A stretch of DNA of 64,000 nt from sequence record ON568341.1; one strand, given 5' to 3'. Positions 5,001-63,872 of the stretch are shown one piece after another. The notes under the pieces were generated by a model that was given only the letters and a program-made list of their open reading frames with translations, ran no database searches and was not told where the DNA came from. Within the stretch, counting starts at the first letter, position 1. Each line of letters starts with the position of its first letter. A program made the position numbers and the translations under genes.

Positions 5001-5464
5001 TTTTCATACCAATTTGCATCCATCGGGTCATTCCAACGAATAATTTTATCTTTTAGCGATTCATTGAAACTATTACGAACATCTTGGTTAGTTTTAATTT
5101 CAGTTAATTTAGCAACTGCACGACCAGGATAAGAACGGCGTGGTGCATAAGAAATCATTTTAGCTAGTTTTAGAACTGATGCACGACGTGTTGCAGTATC
5201 TAAAAAGTTTTCACGTGTGTTTAAATCCATACGAAATGCCAAGTTCTGTCCTAGCATAGAAATTGTATCCAGAATAAAAATGAATTGGTCATTTTCAATC
5301 CAGTCATTGAATGAATCAGGATACGTTTGACGCAAATAATCAATCATACTCTGGCGAATAGTATCAAAATCATATGCAGTAAGATTGATTTTATAAAAAC
5401 TTTCATAAACTTGAGTCCAATCTTCACCACTATATAAATTTGATTGCCTTTTTTGTTGTGACAT
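2003..5464 (-). CDS. gp6: Baseplate wedge subunit (gp6/J-like)
   Basis: N-terminal YDFDTIRQSMIDYL...ENFLDTATRRASVLKLAKMISY and AETIEQIKARAPQMYYTQNRFVNGEDY motifs; C-terminal FNVDNWDFGESFY; adjacent to gp25-like gene. Confidence 0.85.
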   Translation of the reverse strand: MSQQKRQSNLYSGEDWTQVYESFYKINLTAYDFDTIRQSMIDYLRQTYPDSFNDWIENDQFIFILDTISMLGQNLAFRMDLNTRENFLDTATRRASVLKLAKMISYAPRRSYPGRAVAKLTEIKTNQDVRNSFNESLKDKIIRWNDPMDANWYENFILVMNSSFVSTNQFGNPVKRIDVNGVSRQLYRMNTIPMTAPSIPFVATVNGESMTFEVVNPDITSVGVEERHPEPQEQKYIVYQNDGNGFSSPNTGFFVYFIQGTLTYQDYQYNIREENRIQDVNVDNINETDVWVQEINEDGIVRAKWTKVPSMESIAYNTVNRQLKTIFAVSTRDKDQITIKYPDSRSGVVPRGTFRVWYRVSNGKTYNIKTSEIQNKSVKYTYRTKTQSSYESSTLDVRFSLQYESDRAQSAETIEQIKARAPQMYYTQNRFVNGEDYNIAPLSLGNTVLKSKAINRIYSGQSRFIDINDPTGKYQNTDVFSDDGALYQENTKFNRSLLLPTTKTNASIVIDNIQPLIGENAVIQRYQAYPSNTIGIEIQQSWTPVYNSNYTTNTYGRILGSSGTVYGSYQVGTLIKFSNSTTTVWASIVSVLDNGFYVLSTSVPSRMQAIDYILPYRTRFDSVEVQSISAMLDKKTDFVIVHDKETTAWVPVEVSTNDDTIMYNGHEVLVVINVKYTAETWEFDANGIEYIFVGGDKVKFYFVSSKKITDISTGTVQSDKIEILSSNTTSTNNSGLTSNIDFQIYDTIQQENGYLDGSRIIVTSRKVDSNGIPLEPNQFKEIVPEWSGTDALKYGGILIFKENNDFTISVLSLPNDTFTFLDSSWSYTMEQALAEPNTYKRTEFVRNNAIRSNSLSGLYSKGSGFLVCFKYDGKYYFIEQTVGNNNDRLGQLISNLTYSDDTITVTPELAFYRTINNMGTNSDENQKLDYYGYKDVTAQYTVKTNARTSIDFHWKHYAPDDNRIDPSRTNLIDMYVLTNSYKTEVDVWLKNNAVGSIPKPPTSVELKNMFKDVEQKIVISDSIIWHSAEYLPLFGNSAAEDYKADFKVVKLPNSTMSDDEIRQNVIALTNEYFNVDNWDFGESFYYTDLCTYIHSQLGRHISTIVIVAQNPNSKFGSLFEIPSRSDQIFLSTASVENVQIVNSLAKSNINIGS

Positions 5465-5520
5465 AATTTATTCCTTTAAATCAGTAAAGTACTAGTTCAG
5501 TACTGGGAATTATATAGAAA

Positions 5521-5527
5521 TATTTAT
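5521..5527 (-). promoter_or_regulatory. Late promoter ATAAATA
   Basis: tatttat 57 nt upstream of the gp6-like start. Confidence 0.65.
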
Positions 5528-5530
5528 TCA

Positions 5531-5559
5531 AAAAGAAAAGCACTCAGAAGAGTGCTTTT
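5531..5559 (-). terminator. Rho-independent terminator
   Basis: AAAAGCACTC/GAGTGCTTTT stem with T-tract on minus strand after the gp25-like stop. Confidence 0.8.
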
Positions 5560-5565
5560 TCTTAG

Positions 5566-5961
5566 TTATAAAGACGATACAGAATATGTTGCCATTCTAT
5601 TATTACTTCTTGCATCAAAGACTATAGAAAGTTCTTCTACCGTATTCAATACAACGTATTGTAATACGATATTCATTTGGTATCCATATTCAATTCTTGA
5701 AATTTGTATGTTTTTAAGATTTAAGCGTGGATCTAAGCTAATAATCCTACGTGCATCTGCTTCTAAAAGGTTAATAGTATTATATCCTTCCAATTCAAAC
5801 AACAAATCCCATGCAATAAACCCATAGTCTGCATCGAATGCTCTTTCGCCTTTTTTTGTATTAAAATGATTCATCAAATCCTGACGAACCAATTCATTAT
5901 CATACAACGTTTCAGTTCTACCCACAACTGGTGTAGAGAAACCTTTGAAAACAACTGCCAT
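5566..5961 (-). CDS. gp25: Baseplate wedge subunit gp25-like (sheath initiator)
   Basis: LVRQDLMNHFNTKKGERAFDADYG and DPRL motifs of the GPW/gp25 family. Confidence 0.9.
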   Translation of the reverse strand: MAVVFKGFSTPVVGRTETLYDNELVRQDLMNHFNTKKGERAFDADYGFIAWDLLFELEGYNTINLLEADARRIISLDPRLNLKNIQISRIEYGYQMNIVLQYVVLNTVEELSIVFDARSNNRMATYSVSSL

Positions 5962-5974
5962 TGTCTATTTCCTT

Positions 5975-6463
5975 TTATACGGATTCGACGATACGTGCCA
6001 TCTTTTCCGCTCTAGAAGTGGTTTGTTTATACCATGTACTATCACGCAATTCTTTACCAGCAGTTTTATAATCAGCTTTACCTAATGCGGACATTGCTTT
6101 TTTGAATTTCAAAACTTTGGTTTTACCCATTTGGAATACCATCATCCACAATACACGTTGTACCTGTACTGGTGCTGTCATACCAAACTGTTCATAAATG
6201 GATTTTGCGTCATTGTACGCAGTTTGAGCATCTTTAATAAGAAGTTGGTCTGCTTGTTCTTCAGTTAAACCATTTTTGAAGTTCTCGTTGGGAAGAACTA
6301 AATGACCATAACCAATAGTATCAAGTCCGAGGCTATCTTTATATACCCAAAACTTATCATTTTTAAAATATCCAAGTTTTTTTTGATAAGAAATTGTACC
6401 TTCAAACTCTTTAATTTCTTTAAAAAACTGCTCATCTGTATTTTTAATTTCCCATTTACTCAT
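5975..6463 (-). CDS. T4-type lysozyme (GH24 muramidase)
   Basis: E..G...YKDSLGLDTIGYGH with E/D/T triad; LWMMVFQMG and WYKQTTSRA as in T4 lysozyme. Confidence 0.9.
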   Translation of the reverse strand: MSKWEIKNTDEQFFKEIKEFEGTISYQKKLGYFKNDKFWVYKDSLGLDTIGYGHLVLPNENFKNGLTEEQADQLLIKDAQTAYNDAKSIYEQFGMTAPVQVQRVLWMMVFQMGKTKVLKFKKAMSALGKADYKTAGKELRDSTWYKQTTSRAEKMARIVESV

Positions 6464-6479
6464 AAAGACATCCTCATTT

Positions 6480-6487
6480 TATTTATA
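6480..6487 (-). promoter_or_regulatory. Late promoter TATAAATA
   Basis: Perfect T4 late consensus 17 nt upstream of the lysozyme ATG. Confidence 0.8.
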
Positions 6488-6499
6488 GTACTGAAATAT

Positions 6500-9163
6500 T
6501 TATTGACATGCCTCCAAACGTCGAGCCATTAACTCAGCACGGCGTGTCGTTTGGCGATACCAAGCCGAATTACGGATTTGTGCTGCTGCTTGTTTATAAT
6601 TTCCTTTCGCTAATTCAGATAACATTGTTTTAAATTTAAGAACTCCACCTTTGCCCATTTGAAATACCATTTGACATAGAACTTGCTGTGCCATATAAGG
6701 AGTTTTCATGTTATATGATGCATAAATTGATTTAGCATCATAAATTGCTTTACTACTATCACGAACAAGCATATCATTTGCTTGTTGTTCAGTTATACCA
6801 GAAGAAAAGTTTTCGCCATTCACGATTAAATGACCGTAACCAATAGTTGGGTAGCCACGACTATCCAAATAACGCCAGAATTTACCATTTCGATAATACC
6901 CTTTTGCTTGTTGATATTGCATAGTACCCTCATATTCCTTTAATTCGGAAATAAATTGAGAATCACCTGGGACAATTTTCCAATCTATTGCAGTTTTATC
7001 TACATTACCGACATTATATGTTGGTTGTACAACTGGTGTAGATGATACACCACTTCTCTGTGTTCTTCTTTTACGAGGTACATGTCGTGAGCCACGCTGT
7101 GAATAACCAGTACCAATTGTTTTAATTTTGGTAGTAACGACCAATTCATCACTATCAACGGATGGTTGTACTACTGCTTGCGGTGAAGATTGATTTGTTG
7201 CTTGACCTGCAATCAATGTTTTATTAGCTGCATCTGCACCAATACCAGTTTGTGATGCATAAAATAATCCTGGGTCAACTGAACCACTAAAGCCGAGGAC
7301 GTTAGCTGACGTTACACGTATTTCAAATTGCATAACACCATTTGCTTTACCAATGACCTGTCCCTTTTGAACTACATCCTTGTTTAGTAAATTCGTTTGA
7401 ATATTATAAAATATAGATTTATAACCAGATTTATGTTGAATCAAAATCCCACCATTAGTAATTACAACAACACCACCATCTGGTGCAACAACATCTCCTT
7501 TACATTGTATTTCCCATCCAGAACGGTCAGTCTTTCCTCCATTTTGTGTTGGAATGCCTTTTCCCCAATAGCCGTATTGACGAATGGTCCCACTACACGG
7601 CATATACATATGCAAACCTTCATATGTAATGCTATACCCAGTCATTCCAGTATCAGATACCATTAAATCTTGTGTTTGAACTTGTTCGGTTTCGGGTGTA
7701 TAGTTCACAAACTGAATAGCTTCAGTTTCTTGAGCTTCAGGAATTTCTGGTGTAACATCATTTGCAGGCTGTGGCTGAACAGGGGATTCACTTGAAATCT
7801 TCCCCCCACCTTGTCTTGGTGGTTCAACATAACTACCATGGTTTTTCGCATCAACCCATGAAACAATGTCATGAATGTGTTCATTAAGACCAGCAGATGG
7901 TGTTCTGAAATTTGGTGCAGTAAATTCAGCAGTACCGCTATTACCACCACTATTAACTGTTAATGTTTGACCTCCACCACTAACAATTGCTGAAGATGAA
8001 CCAATTAAGTTTGCAGATGTAGAAGCAGAAATAGACGCATTTGAACCAGCAGTAATATCAGTACTGCTACCACTTTGCATACGTAAGGACGCAGCAGTGA
8101 CCAGTCGAAGATCAGCACCGGAATTAACCACAACTTGTCCACCAACTTTTGCATCAAGAGTTCCAATTAGATCTAATTTAGTATTGGCTCCTACGCGTGC
8201 ATTAAAATCTTGACCCGTTTCAATATTATATGAACGACCAGCAGTGATGTTAATATCTTGCCCTGCACGAATATTGATATTCTTATCACAGTGCATGTCA
8301 ATATCCCCTTCACCAGTAAATTTTATACGGGCGGTCCCATCACGATTAATTAAAAGTACATCCCCCGTTGCTTCTGATAATAAAAGTTGTGCACCACTAC
8401 GGGTTTTTATTACAACTCCTTCATTTTTACGAGAACCAACACGGGTGTCGTTTACTGGGTTATTGAATTGTGTATCTTGATATCCATCTGGGTCTTGATC
8501 CCATGTGGGTGCAGTTAATTCCTCTTCGGTATAGCCATCATCAATGATGAAACTATTTCCACGTGGGGATGACATCCCATATACAGTACTCGTTGTTTGG
8601 CGAGTACTACTTCGGTTAGCAAGGCCAGCTTCTTCATCATACAAAAGGTTTTGCTTTTTAAGACCAGCAATAATTGGAACATTTGCATATTTGTCTTGCA
8701 TATCAGTAGTGAGTGTGTTACGATCATAGTCAGTAACAGGAAGAGGCATATCTGTTCCGCTATAATTACTAACATCTGTTGCCATACCAGGGACCATAGT
8801 ATTCATGCGATGGTCATATACACAACCAATCCAATACGCTTGAAATGTACGAGCCTGTGCGAAAATCACAACAACAGTGCACCCAACATCAGGCGGCACA
8901 GCCCAGAATCCATAACCTTTAGGATACTGTCCATAAGCATCTGCACTTGGAATACCTGGTGTTTTACCAGCAAAAGGAGACATATAAGATGCCTCAATCC
9001 ATGATTCTTTTGAATTTTTATCGCTTTGTGAACCTTGTATCCAAACTTTTAACTTTCCAGATTTAGTTGGATCTCTATTATCCATAACTGTTGCTAATTG
9101 TGGATAAGCTGGGTCAAAACGACCCAACTGTTGTTGTGCATACTTTTTACTTGTATCTGCCAT
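6500..9163 (-). CDS. gp5: Baseplate central spike (gp5/VgrG-like) with degenerate M23-like domain and C-terminal lysozyme
   Basis: N-terminal OB-fold (RDPTKSGKLKVWI...GFWAVPPDVG), beta-helix repeats, HIH apex motif (LNEHIHD), M23-like segment, then a GH24 domain (YLDSRGYPTIGYGH). Confidence 0.85.
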   Translation of the reverse strand: MADTSKKYAQQQLGRFDPAYPQLATVMDNRDPTKSGKLKVWIQGSQSDKNSKESWIEASYMSPFAGKTPGIPSADAYGQYPKGYGFWAVPPDVGCTVVVIFAQARTFQAYWIGCVYDHRMNTMVPGMATDVSNYSGTDMPLPVTDYDRNTLTTDMQDKYANVPIIAGLKKQNLLYDEEAGLANRSSTRQTTSTVYGMSSPRGNSFIIDDGYTEEELTAPTWDQDPDGYQDTQFNNPVNDTRVGSRKNEGVVIKTRSGAQLLLSEATGDVLLINRDGTARIKFTGEGDIDMHCDKNINIRAGQDINITAGRSYNIETGQDFNARVGANTKLDLIGTLDAKVGGQVVVNSGADLRLVTAASLRMQSGSSTDITAGSNASISASTSANLIGSSSAIVSGGGQTLTVNSGGNSGTAEFTAPNFRTPSAGLNEHIHDIVSWVDAKNHGSYVEPPRQGGGKISSESPVQPQPANDVTPEIPEAQETEAIQFVNYTPETEQVQTQDLMVSDTGMTGYSITYEGLHMYMPCSGTIRQYGYWGKGIPTQNGGKTDRSGWEIQCKGDVVAPDGGVVVITNGGILIQHKSGYKSIFYNIQTNLLNKDVVQKGQVIGKANGVMQFEIRVTSANVLGFSGSVDPGLFYASQTGIGADAANKTLIAGQATNQSSPQAVVQPSVDSDELVVTTKIKTIGTGYSQRGSRHVPRKRRTQRSGVSSTPVVQPTYNVGNVDKTAIDWKIVPGDSQFISELKEYEGTMQYQQAKGYYRNGKFWRYLDSRGYPTIGYGHLIVNGENFSSGITEQQANDMLVRDSSKAIYDAKSIYASYNMKTPYMAQQVLCQMVFQMGKGGVLKFKTMLSELAKGNYKQAAAQIRNSAWYRQTTRRAELMARRLEACQ

Positions 9164-17951: not shown

Positions 17952-17980
17952 AAAAAAAAAACCAGCAACAATGTGCTGGT
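17952..17980 (-). terminator. Rho-independent terminator of gp26/gp51-like operon
   Basis: ACCAGCA...TGCTGGT stem then a long T-tract on the minus strand. Confidence 0.85.
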
Positions 17981-17990
17981 CGTGTGGGAT

Positions 17991-18200
17991 TTAGTGCTTC
18001 TCGTTTTGTTTTTTAATTTTTTTATTAAAAGACTTAACTAATAAGTCTCTATCTATTAATGGCATATTAAGAAGTGTTCCGTAATCAATATTATCCATAT
18101 ACACAGAACACTCCATTAGTGCATTTTTGATTTCTGACTTATTCAGTTCTATCTCCTTCAGTACTTCTTGTATTTCTTCAGGAGATGACTGGAGAAGCAT
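17991..18200 (-). CDS. gp51-like baseplate hub/tail assembly protein (possibly the frameshift extension of the upstream ORF)
   Basis: YGTLLNMPLIDRDLLVKSFNKK pattern; TAATG overlap; no SD visible upstream. Confidence 0.6.
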   Translation of the reverse strand: MLLQSSPEEIQEVLKEIELNKSEIKNALMECSVYMDNIDYGTLLNMPLIDRDLLVKSFNKKIKKQNEKH

Positions 18201-19036
18201 TACTCGAAAAAATGACTAGGATCATATTTTAGTCCATCAATTTCCCATTGATGATTACATCCATCACACTCAACTTCCATACTATGCGATACTCCAATTT
18301 CAAGTACTTCATCCATTTTTTCACGAATTAGTTTAAGAACTCCTTTTGATTGTTGTCCAAGCCACTCATTAATGAATTCTTTTTCAACTACTTCATCACC
18401 ATCTGGAGTGATGATTTTTGCAATAACTCCACCAATCATATCAAAGTTTAGTTGTGCCATATTTTCAAATACTTCAGAAAATATTTTTACTTTTTCGTCT
18501 TGTTCAATCTCAGCAGTTTCTAGAAACTTAGTTTTCTGCTGCTCACTGAACATACGCTCAGCAAACGATGAATATTCTTTCCATGTTAGTGGTCTAAACT
18601 CTAAACGTAGTCCATTATCTAAATCAATAGATGGGATTTCTTCGAATGCTTGTGCAGTTTCAAGAAGATATGATAGATTACGTTCAAAACGACCTTCTTT
18701 TTCACATTCAGGACATACAGCGTTAATATCATATGTTTCTTCTTTAGATGCAACTTTAATAGCAATAAGAAGCATTTCAACGTCATTTACATATAACTCA
18801 TCAGCATCAATAACATTAGGAACACAGTTTTCAATGACACGTGATACTGCATCGCCGTTTAGTAACATATCTGGTGTATTGAGTGTCATTTCATCACGTG
18901 CACTACGTGCACAAACGCCACATTTGACACCTTTTGGACCTAAAACTCCGTCTTTATAAGGAATAATGCCGTTAGTAACTAATTTTGTACTGATCTCTTC
19001 AATTTTAGTGTACTTAGCAAGTGGATTCATAGCCAT
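18200..19036 (-). CDS. gp26: Baseplate hub assembly chaperone (gp26-like)
   Basis: ARDEMTLNTPDMLLNG, DVEMLLIAIKVAS, two CxxC motifs (CPEC, CDGC). Confidence 0.8.
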   Translation of the reverse strand: MAMNPLAKYTKIEEISTKLVTNGIIPYKDGVLGPKGVKCGVCARSARDEMTLNTPDMLLNGDAVSRVIENCVPNVIDADELYVNDVEMLLIAIKVASKEETYDINAVCPECEKEGRFERNLSYLLETAQAFEEIPSIDLDNGLRLEFRPLTWKEYSSFAERMFSEQQKTKFLETAEIEQDEKVKIFSEVFENMAQLNFDMIGGVIAKIITPDGDEVVEKEFINEWLGQQSKGVLKLIREKMDEVLEIGVSHSMEVECDGCNHQWEIDGLKYDPSHFFE

Positions 19037-19072
19037 TTTTGTTAAATCTCCATGTAATAAATGTGTTTATAG

Positions 19073-19079
19073 TATTTAT
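19073..19079 (-). promoter_or_regulatory. Late promoter ATAAATA
   Basis: Upstream of the gp26-like start; divergent partner at 19128. Confidence 0.65.
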
Positions 19080-19127
19080 GACCCCAATAAAAATTAAATA
19101 AACCATTTTTTATAATCACAATAGTTT

Positions 19128-19135
19128 TATAAATA
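19128..19135 (+). promoter_or_regulatory. Late promoter TATAAATA
   Basis: Perfect consensus 33 nt upstream of tape-measure ATG. Confidence 0.8.
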
Positions 19136-19167
19136 TTTCTATAATACATTTATTAAAAGGGAATGTT

Positions 19168-26273: not shown

Positions 26274-27449
26274 ATGTCACAACTACTAAATGAATCCAAA
26301 TGGGTAGCAGTAAAAGAGAAACTAGTTGAAGGTCTACAGGGTACTCGTAAGTCTGTAATGGAAACTGTTCTTGATAACCATCGTAAAGTTATGCTAACTG
26401 AATCCGCAACTTCTGGTGCAACTACCGCTGGTAATATCGCTACACTAAACAAAGTGATTCTACCAATTATGCGTCGTGTAATGCCAACTGTTATTGCTAA
26501 CGAAATTATCGGTGTTCAGCCTATGACTGGCCCAGTCGGTCAAATTCACACCCTACGTGTACAATATGCTGATAATGCACCTGGTGTTATCGCTGGTGAA
26601 GAAATGCTTTCTCCATACAAAATCGCTAAATCCTACTCTGGTGAACTAAATTCTGATAACAGCAATCCTCAAGCTGCTCCTACTAGCCAACTAGAAGGTA
26701 CTATGGGTCGTCGCGTTAACATCCGTATTCTACGTGAAACAGTTGAAGCGAAATCTCGTCGTCTATCTGCACGTTGGACTGTTGAATCTGCACAAGATGC
26801 TCAATCCCAACATGGTGTTGACGTTGAAGCAGAACTAATGGCTGCAATCGCTCAAGAAGTTACCGTAGAAATCGACCAAGAGCTACTAAGCCGTCTACGT
26901 GCACTACCTGGTGCTGCTGCTGTAACTTATGACCAATCTAAAGTTACTGGTGTTGCAACCTTCGTTGGTGATGAGCACGCTGCTCTAGCAACTCTAATTA
27001 ACCGTCAAGCAAACGAAGTTGCTCGTCGTACTAAGCGTGGTGCTGCAAACTGGGCTGTTGTTTCCCCAACTGCACTAACCATTCTACAATCTGCTACTAC
27101 TTCTAGCTTTGCACGTACCACTGAAGGTACTTTCGAAGCACCAACTAACGTTAAGTTTGTAGGTACTCTAAATAGCACTATGCGTATTTTTGTTGATACT
27201 TATGCAAGTGATTCAGAAGATATTCTAATTGGTTATAAAGGTAATGCAGAAACTGATGCTGGTGTGTTCTATTGCCCATACATCCCACTAATGGCATCCG
27301 GTACTGTAATGGACCCTAACACTGGTGAATTGGTCACAACCTTCCTCACTCGTTATGGTTACGTACAACTCACTGACTCAACCAGTAGCTTGGGTAATGC
27401 TGCGGATTACTACAGCAAAATCGCTATCAAAAACGTTACTTTCATGTAA
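26274..27449 (+). CDS. gp23: Major capsid protein
   Basis: IIGVQPMTGPVGQIHTLR, SRRLSARWTVESAQD, FYCPYIPL, TRYG motifs. Confidence 0.97.
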   Translation: MSQLLNESKWVAVKEKLVEGLQGTRKSVMETVLDNHRKVMLTESATSGATTAGNIATLNKVILPIMRRVMPTVIANEIIGVQPMTGPVGQIHTLRVQYADNAPGVIAGEEMLSPYKIAKSYSGELNSDNSNPQAAPTSQLEGTMGRRVNIRILRETVEAKSRRLSARWTVESAQDAQSQHGVDVEAELMAAIAQEVTVEIDQELLSRLRALPGAAAVTYDQSKVTGVATFVGDEHAALATLINRQANEVARRTKRGAANWAVVSPTALTILQSATTSSFARTTEGTFEAPTNVKFVGTLNSTMRIFVDTYASDSEDILIGYKGNAETDAGVFYCPYIPLMASGTVMDPNTGELVTTFLTRYGYVQLTDSTSSLGNAADYYSKIAIKNVTFM

Positions 27450-27540: not shown

Positions 27541-27569
27541 TTGACAGTACTTAACAATTGTAGTATCAT
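27541..27569 (+). promoter_or_regulatory. Sigma70-like promoter TTGACA-17-TATCAT
   Basis: Canonical -35, 17-nt spacer, near-consensus -10, upstream of the endonuclease gene. Confidence 0.6.
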
Positions 27570-27603
27570 ACGTGTAAATAAAGAAAAGAACTCGGAGAAA
27601 ATC

Positions 27604-29199
27604 GTGTTAGAAGAAATCAAGAAGTTTTTATCAGAGAAAAATGTTCGTGGTGTTAAATCTGCTCTGCAAGCAAAATCTGTATACATTGAATTCCTGCGAG
27701 AGATGTTTGGTGATATCGATCTTAATGAAATGATTTATATGGTATTGAATGATATTACTTCAGTGCCGAATGCTGAATGTGGTGACAAAGCTAAGTTTAT
27801 AAGTATTACCGAAGGATATTCTTACAAGTGCAATAAACCATTTCAAGGAAAAGGAAAATGCCTTATCTGTTGCTCCGCAGTTGCTAGGAAACGTAAAGAA
27901 ACTTACAAAGAAAAAACTGGTTATGATAACCCGGCACAGAATCCAGAAATTCAAAAGAAAATAGGGTATACCAATGAACAACGTTATGGCACTCGTATTG
28001 CTCAACAATCTGAACAAGTAAAGCAGAAATCAATAGAAACTAATATTAAAAAGTATGGTGTTGTTCATCCATCACAGTTGGAAAGTAATAAACAGCAACG
28101 TTTACAAACGGTACAAGAAAAGTATGGTATCAATAATGTATGGCAACTTAATAAAGGTCTTAGTGCACGTTATGAACAGTTTAAAACACGATTTGAACAG
28201 GATGGTAAATTTACTCTTTTAAGTGATGAATCCCATTATGATAATAGCAATGACGCAACTCATGCAATCATGCACTGGAAATGTAATGAATGTGGTAATG
28301 AGTTTGATAAAGTTGCTCTTTGCTTACGCTGCCCTAAGTGTGAACCATATTCATCCAGTACTGAAGAAGTAAATCTTTATAATTACATTACCTCTATCTA
28401 TAGTGGTGTGGTTATTCAAAACAGCCGCAACATCATCAAAGGTAATGAGATTGATATCTTCATCCCAGAATTGAAACTTGGTATTGAGTTCAATGGTGAG
28501 TATTGGCATCGTGATGAAGTTCGTGGTAAAAACTATCATCAATCCAAATACTTCAAAATGAAGGAAGCAGGATACAAACTTATCACTATCTATAGTAATG
28601 AATGGTCAAATAAAACTGAAATTGTTAAGAATCGTTTGAAAAGTTTGATTAGTGTGGATAGTAAAATCTATGCTCGTAAGTGTGAAGTTAGATTGGTTGC
28701 CCATGAAGAATGTGATAAATTTTTGTATGAACATCATATTCAAGGACCATGCCAATCATCAATCAAACTTGGACTTTACTATAATGATGATTTGGTTGCT
28801 TTGATGACATTTGGTGCACCACGATTTAACAAGCAGTATGAATATGAATTACTGCGTTATTGTTCTAAAGGAACAGTTGTTGGGGGTGCATCGAAACTGT
28901 TAAAACATTTTGAACGTATGTATCTTCCTAAATCTCTTCTTTCATACGCCGATATGAACTGGAGTACTGGTAATTTGTATGAAAAAATTGGTTTTACTTT
29001 AGAAGAAGTAACTCAACCTGGTTATTTTTACTATGATAGAAAAAACGAAGTTGTTTATTCTCGCCATCAATGCCAAAAACAAAAACTTATTAAAAAATAT
29101 AATTTTGATAGTTCTATGACAGAGAAGGAAATGACAAAAGAATTAGGATACTTTAGAATCTATGATTGTGGTAACTTAGTTTATAAAAAGATTTACTAA
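27604..29199 (+). mobile_element. Free-standing Hef-like putative homing endonuclease
   Basis: YG..N..Q repeats, CxxC zinc motifs, EIDIFIPELKLGIEFNGEYWH PD-(D/E)xK-type core, C-terminal IYARKC...YELLRYCS...SYAD domain. Start moved to GTG 27604 (GGAG SD; aligns with the paralogue N-terminus). Confidence 0.75.
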
Positions 29200-39620: not shown

Positions 39621-45972
<6,352 letters not shown>

Positions 45973-62124: not shown

Positions 62125-63872
62125 TTATAGATGAATTGAAGAAATTCTTAAAAAGCAAAAACAAAAAAACATGGGTTAAGTTGGTAAACAATAATGAAGT
62201 ATATTTTAAATATGTTCGTGAATTGTTCCCAACTAAACCCATGAATGAAGCATTATATCTTATAATGAACGATATGGTATGTGCACCATCTGCCCCATGT
62301 GGTTCTGAATGTAAATTTATTAATGGTTCATATGATAAGTATTGTTCTAAACCAACAAAACCAAACAAAAATCGTGATAATGGTTTTTGTGTAGTATGTA
62401 ATGAACATTGGAAGAACACCAAACTCAAAACTACTAAACAAAAATGCATTGATACTTATGGAGTCGAATACCATTGGCAAAGAAATGATGTAAAGGACAA
62501 AATAAAAAGTACTAATATGAAACGATATGGTGTTGAACACAATTCACATATCGAACATGTTCTTGAAAAACGAAAGGAAACTTTCATTAAAAGATATGGT
62601 GTTGAATCACCTTTGGCATCTGTTGAAATTCGTGATAAGATAAAAGCAACAAACATTGAAAAATATGGTGTTGAAAATTATGGAAGTACTGATGAATGTA
62701 TAGAAAAACGAAATAAAACAATGATGGATTTGTATGGTGTTAATAATGCACAACATGTAACGAAATTTTTAAATGAATCAAAGGTTACGAAAGCTAAAAT
62801 TAGGTATGATAAAATTTTATCTATTATTAACCCTTCATATAAAGAACTTTTTGAATATGATGACTTAATTGATTCTACTAATGAAAGTAAACTTCCGTAT
62901 TATTGTGAAATACACAAAGGGTTGTTTTATAGTAATTATAAATATGGTATAGTTTGTAGTGTTTGTAATCCACCCGTGTATAGTTCCATACAAAATGAAA
63001 TAAAGAATTTTGTGTCAACATTGACTGAATGTGACATTATTATGAATGATCGAAGTAATGGGTATGAATATGATATATACATCCCTGAACTTCAGATAGC
63101 AATAGAAGTTAATGGTATGTATTGGCACAAAAGTGATATGGTTGATAAGTATTATCATAGGGCAAAAACAATAAATTCAATCGAACGTGGTATTAGATTG
63201 ATACATATATTTGAAGATGAATGGTACAGTAAACAGAAAATTATTAAAAATAGATTAATGAACGTTTTTCAATGTTCTAGTAAGATTTATGCCAGAAAAT
63301 GTATTGTTAAAAAAATCAATACAAATATTTGTTATGATTTCCTAAACACTAATCATATACAAGGATATACTAGAACTGGAATAAACTATGGTTTGTTTTA
63401 TAAACAAGAACTGGTTGCAGTAATGACGTTCAGTAAAAGTCGATATGATAAAAAATTTGAATATGAGCTAATACGATACTGCTCACGTGGAACTGTTGTT
63501 GGTGGTGCTGGTAAATTATTGTCTGCATTTGAGCGTGATTACAAACCATTGTCGTTGATGAGCTACGCAGACTTGAATTGGGGTTCTGGACAGTTATACA
63601 TATCTCTTAACTTTGAAAATTTAGGATATACAGAACCAAAATATTTTTATTATGATCCAAAAACAAAACAGCGTTTTTCTAGACAAAAATTTAGAAAACA
63701 TAAATTGATTGAAATGGGATACAACTCATCTAAAACCGAAGAAGAGATATGCTTGGGTGAAATTGGATTGTATAAAATATACGATTCTGGCAATTGTAAA
63801 TTTGCTAAATATTATTACAACATAAACATTACAGGAGATATTGAAAAATGTCCAAATCGTACAAAAAACTAA
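62121..63872 (+). mobile_element. Second Hef-like putative homing endonuclease (paralogue of 27604-29199)
   Basis: About five YGVE repeats, EYDIYIPELQIAIEVNGMYWH, IYARKC...YELIRYCS...SYAD. Confidence 0.78.

Follow-up and report, generated by a model that had tools for sequence, protein, structure and literature searches.

A probable programmed −1 frameshift at the 3′ end of a gp26/gp51-family gene in Escherichia phage UE-S1 and related jumbo phages

In this work we have investigated a stretch of 64,000 nucleotides (nt) of DNA from record ON568341.1, referred to below as the window. Its sequence shows 100% identity to that of Escherichia phage UE-S1 (ON568341, Asteriusvirus), a Rak2-like jumbo myovirus of 358 kb. 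Our subject is a gene in this window whose product resembles the phage T4 proteins gp26 and gp51, together with the small open reading frame (ORF) which follows it. We consider it likely that this single gene of the gp26/gp51 family carries a programmed −1 ribosomal frameshift at its 3′ end and is expressed as two isoforms, of 278 and 348 amino acids (aa). According to this model, most ribosomes would read TTT TTC GAG and then stop, releasing the short form. A minority would slip with Phe-tRNAs on TTT in the P site and TTC in the A site; both tRNAs would shift back by one base, to T_TT and T_TT, each re-pairing with a Phe codon, and 71 more codons would then be read in the −1 frame. The long form would thus consist of the 277-residue body which is common to both isoforms and a small helical C-terminal domain. 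The two isoforms may act together as non-virion chaperones for the assembly of the baseplate hub and tape-measure complex, in a ratio set by the frequency of the slip. The comparisons described below show how the site is built, that it is conserved, that selection acts on the −1 frame past the heptamer, that the protein belongs to the gp26/gp51 family, and that its ends correspond to those of the T4 proteins. That it is the ribosome rather than RNA polymerase which slips, how efficiently it does so, and the chaperone role are what we infer; that the frameshift is real and ancient is very probable. The original prediction, an earlier note on this DNA, had proposed a −1 slip by which the downstream ORF is appended to the gp26-like protein, and a comparison of 31 intact loci now strongly supports this proposal.

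The slip site and its conservation

On the minus strand the gp26-like gene ends with the codons CAT TTT TTC GAG TAA (18214..18200), and the heptamer T_TTT_TTC lies within them at 18212..18206, in the X_XXY_YYZ phase, with the stop codon (18202..18200) two codons later; both position and phase are as originally claimed. The −1 frame has a stop one codon 5′ of the heptamer and is then open down to 17991, for 73 codons counted from the heptamer. The annotated small ORF of 69 codons lies in this −1 frame and begins with an ATG at 18200..18198, which overlaps the gp26-like stop by one base. As had been noted before, no Shine-Dalgarno sequence is visible there: we found no purine-rich ribosome-binding motif upstream of this ATG, and the GenBank record of UE-S1, in which ribosome-binding sites are annotated for the neighbouring genes, gives none for the small ORF. 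The length of the predicted long product, by count 277 + 2 + 69 residues, agrees with the 348 aa (against 278 for the short form) given in the original prediction.

Sites of this kind can also occur by chance. We counted all in-phase X_XXY_YYZ heptamers in those ORFs of the window which encode at least 100 aa. There were 106, and in three cases a stop codon stands no more than a few codons away and a long −1 ORF extends past it; judged from the UE-S1 genome alone, the finding exceeds chance only weakly. The octamer made up of the heptamer and the following G is present in one copy in the 64 kb, the expected number being 4.8. An AAAAAAC heptamer at 41174..41180 (+) served as a control. It is in phase, three codons 5′ of the stop of ORF 40692..41186, and the −1 frame at this point runs into the next gene, ORF 41210..41914 (+). 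Three relatives have lost this heptamer, via synonymous or other changes, and the offset between its frame and that of the following gene is not constant; we regard this site as a chance look-alike. A third in-phase heptamer, again AAAAAAC, is found at 63863..63869 (+), two codons before the end of ORF 62241..63872, and past it the −1 frame stays open over 46 codons or more, as far as the window reaches.

Conservation lifts the site at the end of the gp26-like gene far above what chance would give. A search for related loci with a single protein yielded 3 loci only. Using tblastn, the small ORF was found in 74 phage records, all of them Rak2-like, and the gp26-like protein in 95 records, at one place per genome; the latter protein is present in the far more distant jumbo phages Atu_ph07, PA5oct, XacN1, Xoo-sp13 and CM1. 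For the comparison we took 26 loci from phage records or IMG/VR and six metagenome contigs. Escherichia phage CMSTMSU, whose record is marked UNVERIFIED, was left out: its gp26-like gene has two frameshift-type breaks and is annotated as two fragments, which is most likely an assembly error in a low-quality record. The 31 intact loci that remain cover Asteriusvirus, RaK2, Mimasvirus, Eneladusvirus, Vibrio and Xanthomonas phages, Atu_ph07, PA5oct, XacN1/Xoo-sp13, CM1 and the six metagenome contigs, with identities of the gp26-like protein down to about 20%. The original prediction had proposed to look for conservation of the heptamer and of the frame in relatives, and both are kept at every one of these loci, each of which has the six T’s in this phase and, in the −1 relation to the gp26-like gene, a homologous ORF. 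An invariant Phe-Phe is encoded within T_TTT_TTC or, in the XacN1-like clade, within T_TTT_TTT. The 0-frame stop follows 1–15 codons past the heptamer, and the −1 ORF, which is 71–90 codons long, opens 0–57 nt before it. In a DNA alignment of 21 sequences the six T’s are the sole invariant run.

The codon before the site encodes any of seven residues (His, Ser, Asn, Tyr, Ala, Arg or Phe), yet its third base is T in 27 of 27 loci. All 27 likewise use TTT as the first Phe codon, although TTT accounts for only 62% of the Phe codons elsewhere in the same genes. By our own estimate, in which about 17 deep lineages are treated as independent, synonymous-site invariance of this extent would arise by chance with a probability of about 1e-7; as judged from the aligned codons, there is a synonymous-site constraint at the heptamer. 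The length and sequence of the −1 product are kept while the position of the 0-frame stop varies: counted from the second codon of the small ORF as annotated, it lies at −5, +1, +4, +10 or +25 nt. The places at which the −1 ORF offers a start codon are inconsistent, the first of them preceding the heptamer by 36 nt and the last following it by 114 nt. Some lineages only have a start which coincides with that of the UE-S1 small ORF or lies close to it, and the −1 ORF of PA5oct has no ATG, GTG or TTG anywhere. Just after the heptamer the variability of the alignment columns is 0.84, 0.64 and 1.18 for positions 1, 2 and 3 of the −1-frame codons, and the same pattern is seen in the rest of the small ORF. 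At the heptamer the codon-phase variability switches to the −1 frame; selection acts in that frame from there onwards.

We also asked whether nature has ever joined the two parts in one frame. Three large searches, among 5.8 billion protein clusters and 1.84 billion representatives, returned no natural in-frame fusion. Nearly all homologues of the gp26-like protein (119/120) end 1–15 residues past the Phe-Phe, and all are 256–317 aa long. The small domain is represented in the databases only by gene calls of 51–67 aa, for which various internal methionines have been taken as the start. The frameshift is marked in none of the 22 annotated records that we examined, and in these the small ORF is begun at arbitrary internal ATGs or omitted; neither in the literature nor among annotations did we find this frameshift reported.

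The predicted products and their relation to T4 gp26 and gp51

Database searches were run with the 0-frame and −1-frame products separately. The 278-aa body matched the hidden Markov model (HMM) of PF12322 (T4_baseplate) with 84.5 bits, the cut-off being 24.5, and an expect value (E) of 1.1e-23. Its AlphaFold model has a predicted local distance difference test (pLDDT) score of 89, and a fold search of BFVD gave 75 matches at E ≤ 0.001, including entries named ‘Baseplate hub assembly protein, bacteriophage T4-like’ and Aeromonas phage 25 Gp26. Among solved structures there was no PDB sequence match for the body; the best PDB fold had an E of 0.086, and the HK97 chaperone an E of 1.3. Besides the Phe-Phe at residues 276–277, four cysteines (108, 111, 257 and 260) are invariant, as judged from 28 homologues of which the most distant have an identity of some 20%. 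These cysteines are probably part of a zinc ribbon which clamps the two halves of the protein together; some homologues carry the label of zinc-ribbon ribosomal proteins in the automatic annotation of JGI. The −1 product is a small helical domain, with 3–4 helices in the predicted model (pLDDT 85), and a fold search with it returned its own family only. Two other fold matches, to a ‘tail assembly chaperone’ (E 0.95) and a T4-like ‘baseplate protein’ (E 1.6), were not significant and were set aside. NCBIfam held no match for either product. In a Pfam copy which lacks PF28602, searched with a permissive cut-off, there was no meaningful match to the −1 product or to the 734-aa protein encoded by the divergently transcribed neighbouring gene. 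In the table of the CBB virion proteome the homologue of this neighbour is listed with 29 peptides, and neither the gp26-like protein nor the small ORF is listed.

For comparison, T4 genes 26 and 51 were read from NC_000866. Both proteins match PF12322 over their first ~200 residues, gp26 with 215.6 bits and gp51 with 177.5 bits. T4 gp26 ends three residues past the equivalent Phe-Phe, which is encoded by TTC TTT and offers no slip site. In T4 gp51 the same frame continues for some 49 residues more, and a second C-terminal domain, PF28602, is present in relatives of gp51. When the profile of the −1 product was compared by hhalign with the C-terminal block of the gp51 family, the two were collinear (E 4.7e-5, probability 68%), and a permissive run extended the alignment to a Leu-Leu / Pro-acidic-acidic-Ile motif right past the junction. 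The Pfam coordinates place Val199-Phe200 of gp51 opposite the Phe-Phe of gp26. Since hhalign comparisons of the jumbo-phage body profile with the single T4 gp26 or gp51 sequences were weak, we base membership of the family on Pfam and the fold search. Because gp26 ends just past Phe-Phe and the tail of gp51 resembles the −1 product, T4 seems to encode both isoforms as paralogous genes, gp26 being the short form and gp51 the long one. The downstream ORF had been called gp51-like in the original prediction; its likeness, a moderate one, is to the C-terminal extension of gp51, and not to gp51 as a whole.

The two systems agree in that the 278-aa protein of UE-S1 belongs to the T4 family by HMM and by fold, in the end of gp26 near Phe-Phe, and in gp51 having the same body and a tail with a moderate likeness to the −1 product. 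They differ in their genetic arrangement, since T4 has two diverged and divergently transcribed paralogous genes without a slip site, whereas the jumbo phages have one gene and would rely on recoding. The bodies in T4 are also shorter, about 200 aa compared with 277 in UE-S1, and the tail of gp51 is about 15 residues shorter than the −1 product. What might such proteins do? In T4, both gp26 and gp51 are named among the hub assembly chaperones, and the particle contains no gp51 (PMC3004832). Elsewhere in T4, genes 27 (5229..6404) and 28 (6349..6882) share 56 nt. Gene 28 is read in the +1 frame relative to gene 27, and their overlap contains no slippery heptamer.

Ribosomal slippage and other explanations

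Several observations weigh against a programmed ribosomal frameshift in UE-S1, or against the link to T4 that we draw from it. In the clade of the window no significant RNA structure was found downstream of the site (z = −0.9), and RNAalifold, applied to 21 sequences across clades, predicted no pairs and no shared structure. An ATG stands at or near the 0-frame stop in UE-S1, its close relatives, Atu_ph07 and the Kaldavass/XbC2 pair, and in these phages translational coupling could also yield the product of the small ORF on its own. The likeness between the −1 product and the C-terminal extension of gp51 appears moderate: against full-length gp51 profiles hhalign gave an E of 4.4e-4 and a probability of 34%, gp51 was not returned by the fold search with the −1 product, and MAFFT prefers another register at the junction than Pfam does, gp51 continuing past the junction in either register. 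Finally, the chaperone role and any contact with the tape measure are carried over by analogy from the T4 literature.

Since no conserved stimulatory RNA structure is detectable in the UE-S1 clade, the slip there is probably a low-level one. Among the distant clades, XacN1, its XacN1-like relatives and PA5oct do have a stem which begins 6 nt past the heptamer. The stem of the XacN1-like clade has 10 pairs, 4 of them with compensatory changes, and when the sequences were folded in comparison with shuffles, XacN1 reached z = −2.6 and Atu_ph07, which has a strong hairpin after the site, z = −5.9. Rfam gave sub-threshold matches to small RNAs only, which sit on the hairpin of the terminator beyond the small ORF.

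Could the same pair of proteins be made in a different way? If RNA polymerase added one U in the run of six T’s, the predicted protein would be identical, so that conservation alone cannot tell this mechanism from ribosomal slippage. The site is a homopolymer, and it is the length of the run, not the exact form of the heptamer, which is invariant, with T7 in some relatives and T9 in one. The run is, however, always in the phase which permits both tRNAs to re-pair, and the stem that follows at 6 nt in two distant clades has the classic spacing of a ribosomal stimulator. Efficient slippage of bacterial RNA polymerase usually needs runs of about 8–9 or more, and because six T’s make a short run we think transcriptional slippage improbable. 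It might also be that there is no recoding at all, the small ORF being a separate gene translated by termination and reinitiation and the heptamer a by-product of Phe-Phe in an AT-rich genome. This explanation has to account for the many lineages, indeed most, in which no start lies near the junction, and for PA5oct, where the whole −1 ORF lacks one; the overlap of stop and ATG in UE-S1 and the same or a nearby arrangement in the other phages named above would fit it. All database annotations do show two separate genes, and similar coincidences of heptamer and ORF arise by chance in the window. On the other hand, conserved coding in the −1 phase begins at the heptamer, upstream of any start, the synonymous positions of the heptamer do not vary in the 27 loci, and the −1 relation and spacing never vary, unlike those of the control gene pair. 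We regard separate genes as an improbable explanation, too.

The two frames could, lastly, be an artefact of sequencing or assembly, a true single ORF of 348 codons having been split by a miscounted homopolymer. Homopolymer runs are error-prone, and the low-quality CMSTMSU record, with its two breaks, does differ from the others. The same two-frame arrangement is present, however, in over 70 phage genomes, each sequenced independently, and in several assemblies of metagenomes, obtained on different platforms, and the searches among billions of protein clusters and representatives met no single-frame version. This distribution effectively refutes the artefact, to which we attach next to no probability. 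A programmed −1 ribosomal frameshift is the explanation that we prefer.

Gene neighbourhood and comparison with lambda G/GT and dnaX

The features of the locus are collected in the table.

Features at and around the slip site (positions in the window)
Feature	Position	Strand	Remarks
gp26-like gene, 0 frame, 278 aa	18200..19036	-	T4 gp26/gp51 family, PF12322, phrog_150 ‘baseplate hub’
Slippery heptamer T_TTT_TTC (putative slip site)	18206..18212	-	third base of codon 275 and Phe codons 276–277
−1-frame open stretch, 74 codons + stop	17991..18215	-	71-residue extension encoded from the heptamer on, phrog_18291
Small ORF as annotated, 69 aa	17991..18200	-	ATG overlaps the gp26-like stop
Intrinsic-terminator-like hairpin and T-run	17960..17981	-	directly after the −1 ORF; annotated terminator in the UE-S1 record
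Divergent intergenic region	19037..19167	.	GGAG ribosome-binding site 10 nt 5′ of the gp26-like ATG; A/T-rich octamers on both strands
Virion structural protein gene, 734 aa	19168..21372	+	phrog_14121; transcribed divergently from the gp26-like gene

The hairpin and T-run mark the end of the transcription unit. The A/T-rich octamers of the intergenic region (19128..19135 on the plus strand and 19080..19073 on the minus strand) lie about 33–37 nt 5′ of the divergent starts and resemble late promoters of the T4 type; compared with the T4 late-promoter consensus, the plus-strand octamer would be an exact match and the minus-strand one would agree at 7/8 positions. Other genes of T4 type near the site, besides the gp26-like gene, encode gp47/gp46-like nuclease subunits and endonuclease VII. 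Past the gp26-like gene there follow the divergent gene of the 734-aa virion protein and then the portal, prohead protease and major capsid genes. The original prediction had placed the pair next to the tape-measure gene, and this we could not substantiate. The 734-aa protein has no significant similarity to any tape-measure family, a BLASTP match to T4 gp29 (E 0.16) was not significant and was discarded, and the tape-measure label has been given to this protein by some depositors only; it is a possible tape measure.

Two further observations concern genes elsewhere in the window. The large terminase is present as two ORFs, 41210..41914 (+) of 234 aa and 41889..44549 (+) of 886 aa, which overlap by 26 nt in different frames and are both annotated as large terminase subunit in relatives; the gene may have been split, or recoding or splicing may be at work here as well. 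A homing/HNH endonuclease gene (27541..29199, +, phrog_3339) lies directly after the major capsid gene (26274..27449).

The −1 frameshift which produces gpG and gpGT in lambda, and its counterparts in other tail chaperone genes, are known from the work of Levin 1993 and of Xu, Hendrix and Duda 2004, as summarised in PMC5009743. The G/GT frameshift is there described as general in long-tailed phages ‘except T4’ (PMC5009743). The original prediction had linked gp26 and gp51 to these chaperones. The architecture is indeed alike: in lambda, and very probably in UE-S1, a heptamer placed a few codons short of the first stop lets a −1 slip connect two overlapping ORFs, the products being a majority short form and a minority long form with a common N-terminal body. 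In both cases the arrangement is conserved despite very low sequence similarity. The presumed role is alike too, the products being assembly factors and not virion parts, for which in UE-S1 we lean on the T4 literature and the CBB proteome table. The likeness does not extend further. The UE-S1 pair shows no relation in sequence or fold to known tail assembly chaperones, and no family of tail assembly chaperones in Pfam, PHROGs or NCBIfam matched its products. It also stands outside the order of tube, chaperone and tape-measure genes, flanked as it is by ORFs on the endonuclease VII side and by the divergent 734-aa gene. Its heptamer is all-U and not of the lambda type, and the pair belongs to the T4 hub-assembly family, that is, to the very lineage which has been called the exception (PMC5009743). 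The analogy with G/GT would therefore hold for the architecture and the likely role, and not for fold, sequence or gene position.

The tau and gamma forms of E. coli dnaX offer another comparison, as they too arise by a bacterial −1 tandem slip on a homopolymeric heptamer and are two isoforms with a common N-terminal body in a set ratio. A stop follows almost immediately in the shifted frame of dnaX, which makes the product of the slip the shorter of the two, and the efficiency reaches about 50% thanks to strong stimulators in the flanking sequence. In UE-S1, by contrast, the shifted product would be the longer one, and no stimulator is detectable in its clade.

More questions follow from the apparent kinship of the UE-S1 gene with T4 gp26 and gp51. 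Could the PF12322 proteins gp26 and gp51 be the counterpart of G/GT in the T4 superfamily? Perhaps the single frameshift gene is the older state, kept in several lineages of jumbo phages, and T4-type phages duplicated it and fixed gp26 as the short and gp51 as the long form; we put this forward tentatively, as an idea that has a fair chance of being right and a somewhat greater one of being wrong. If it is true, it would explain T4 as the one exception to the conserved frameshift in tail assembly, and gp26 and gp51 would be predicted to act on the tape measure gp29 in a set ratio. As annotations leave the frameshift unmarked, the long isoform is missing from every proteome database that we searched. 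The −1 frameshift of tail assembly is a textbook case of recoding, and the probable site in UE-S1 would bring the same device into the T4 hub-assembly family, as a new case within this class with an evolutionary link to T4. It also suggests how T4 may manage without a frameshift, that is, by using two paralogous genes in place of two frames.

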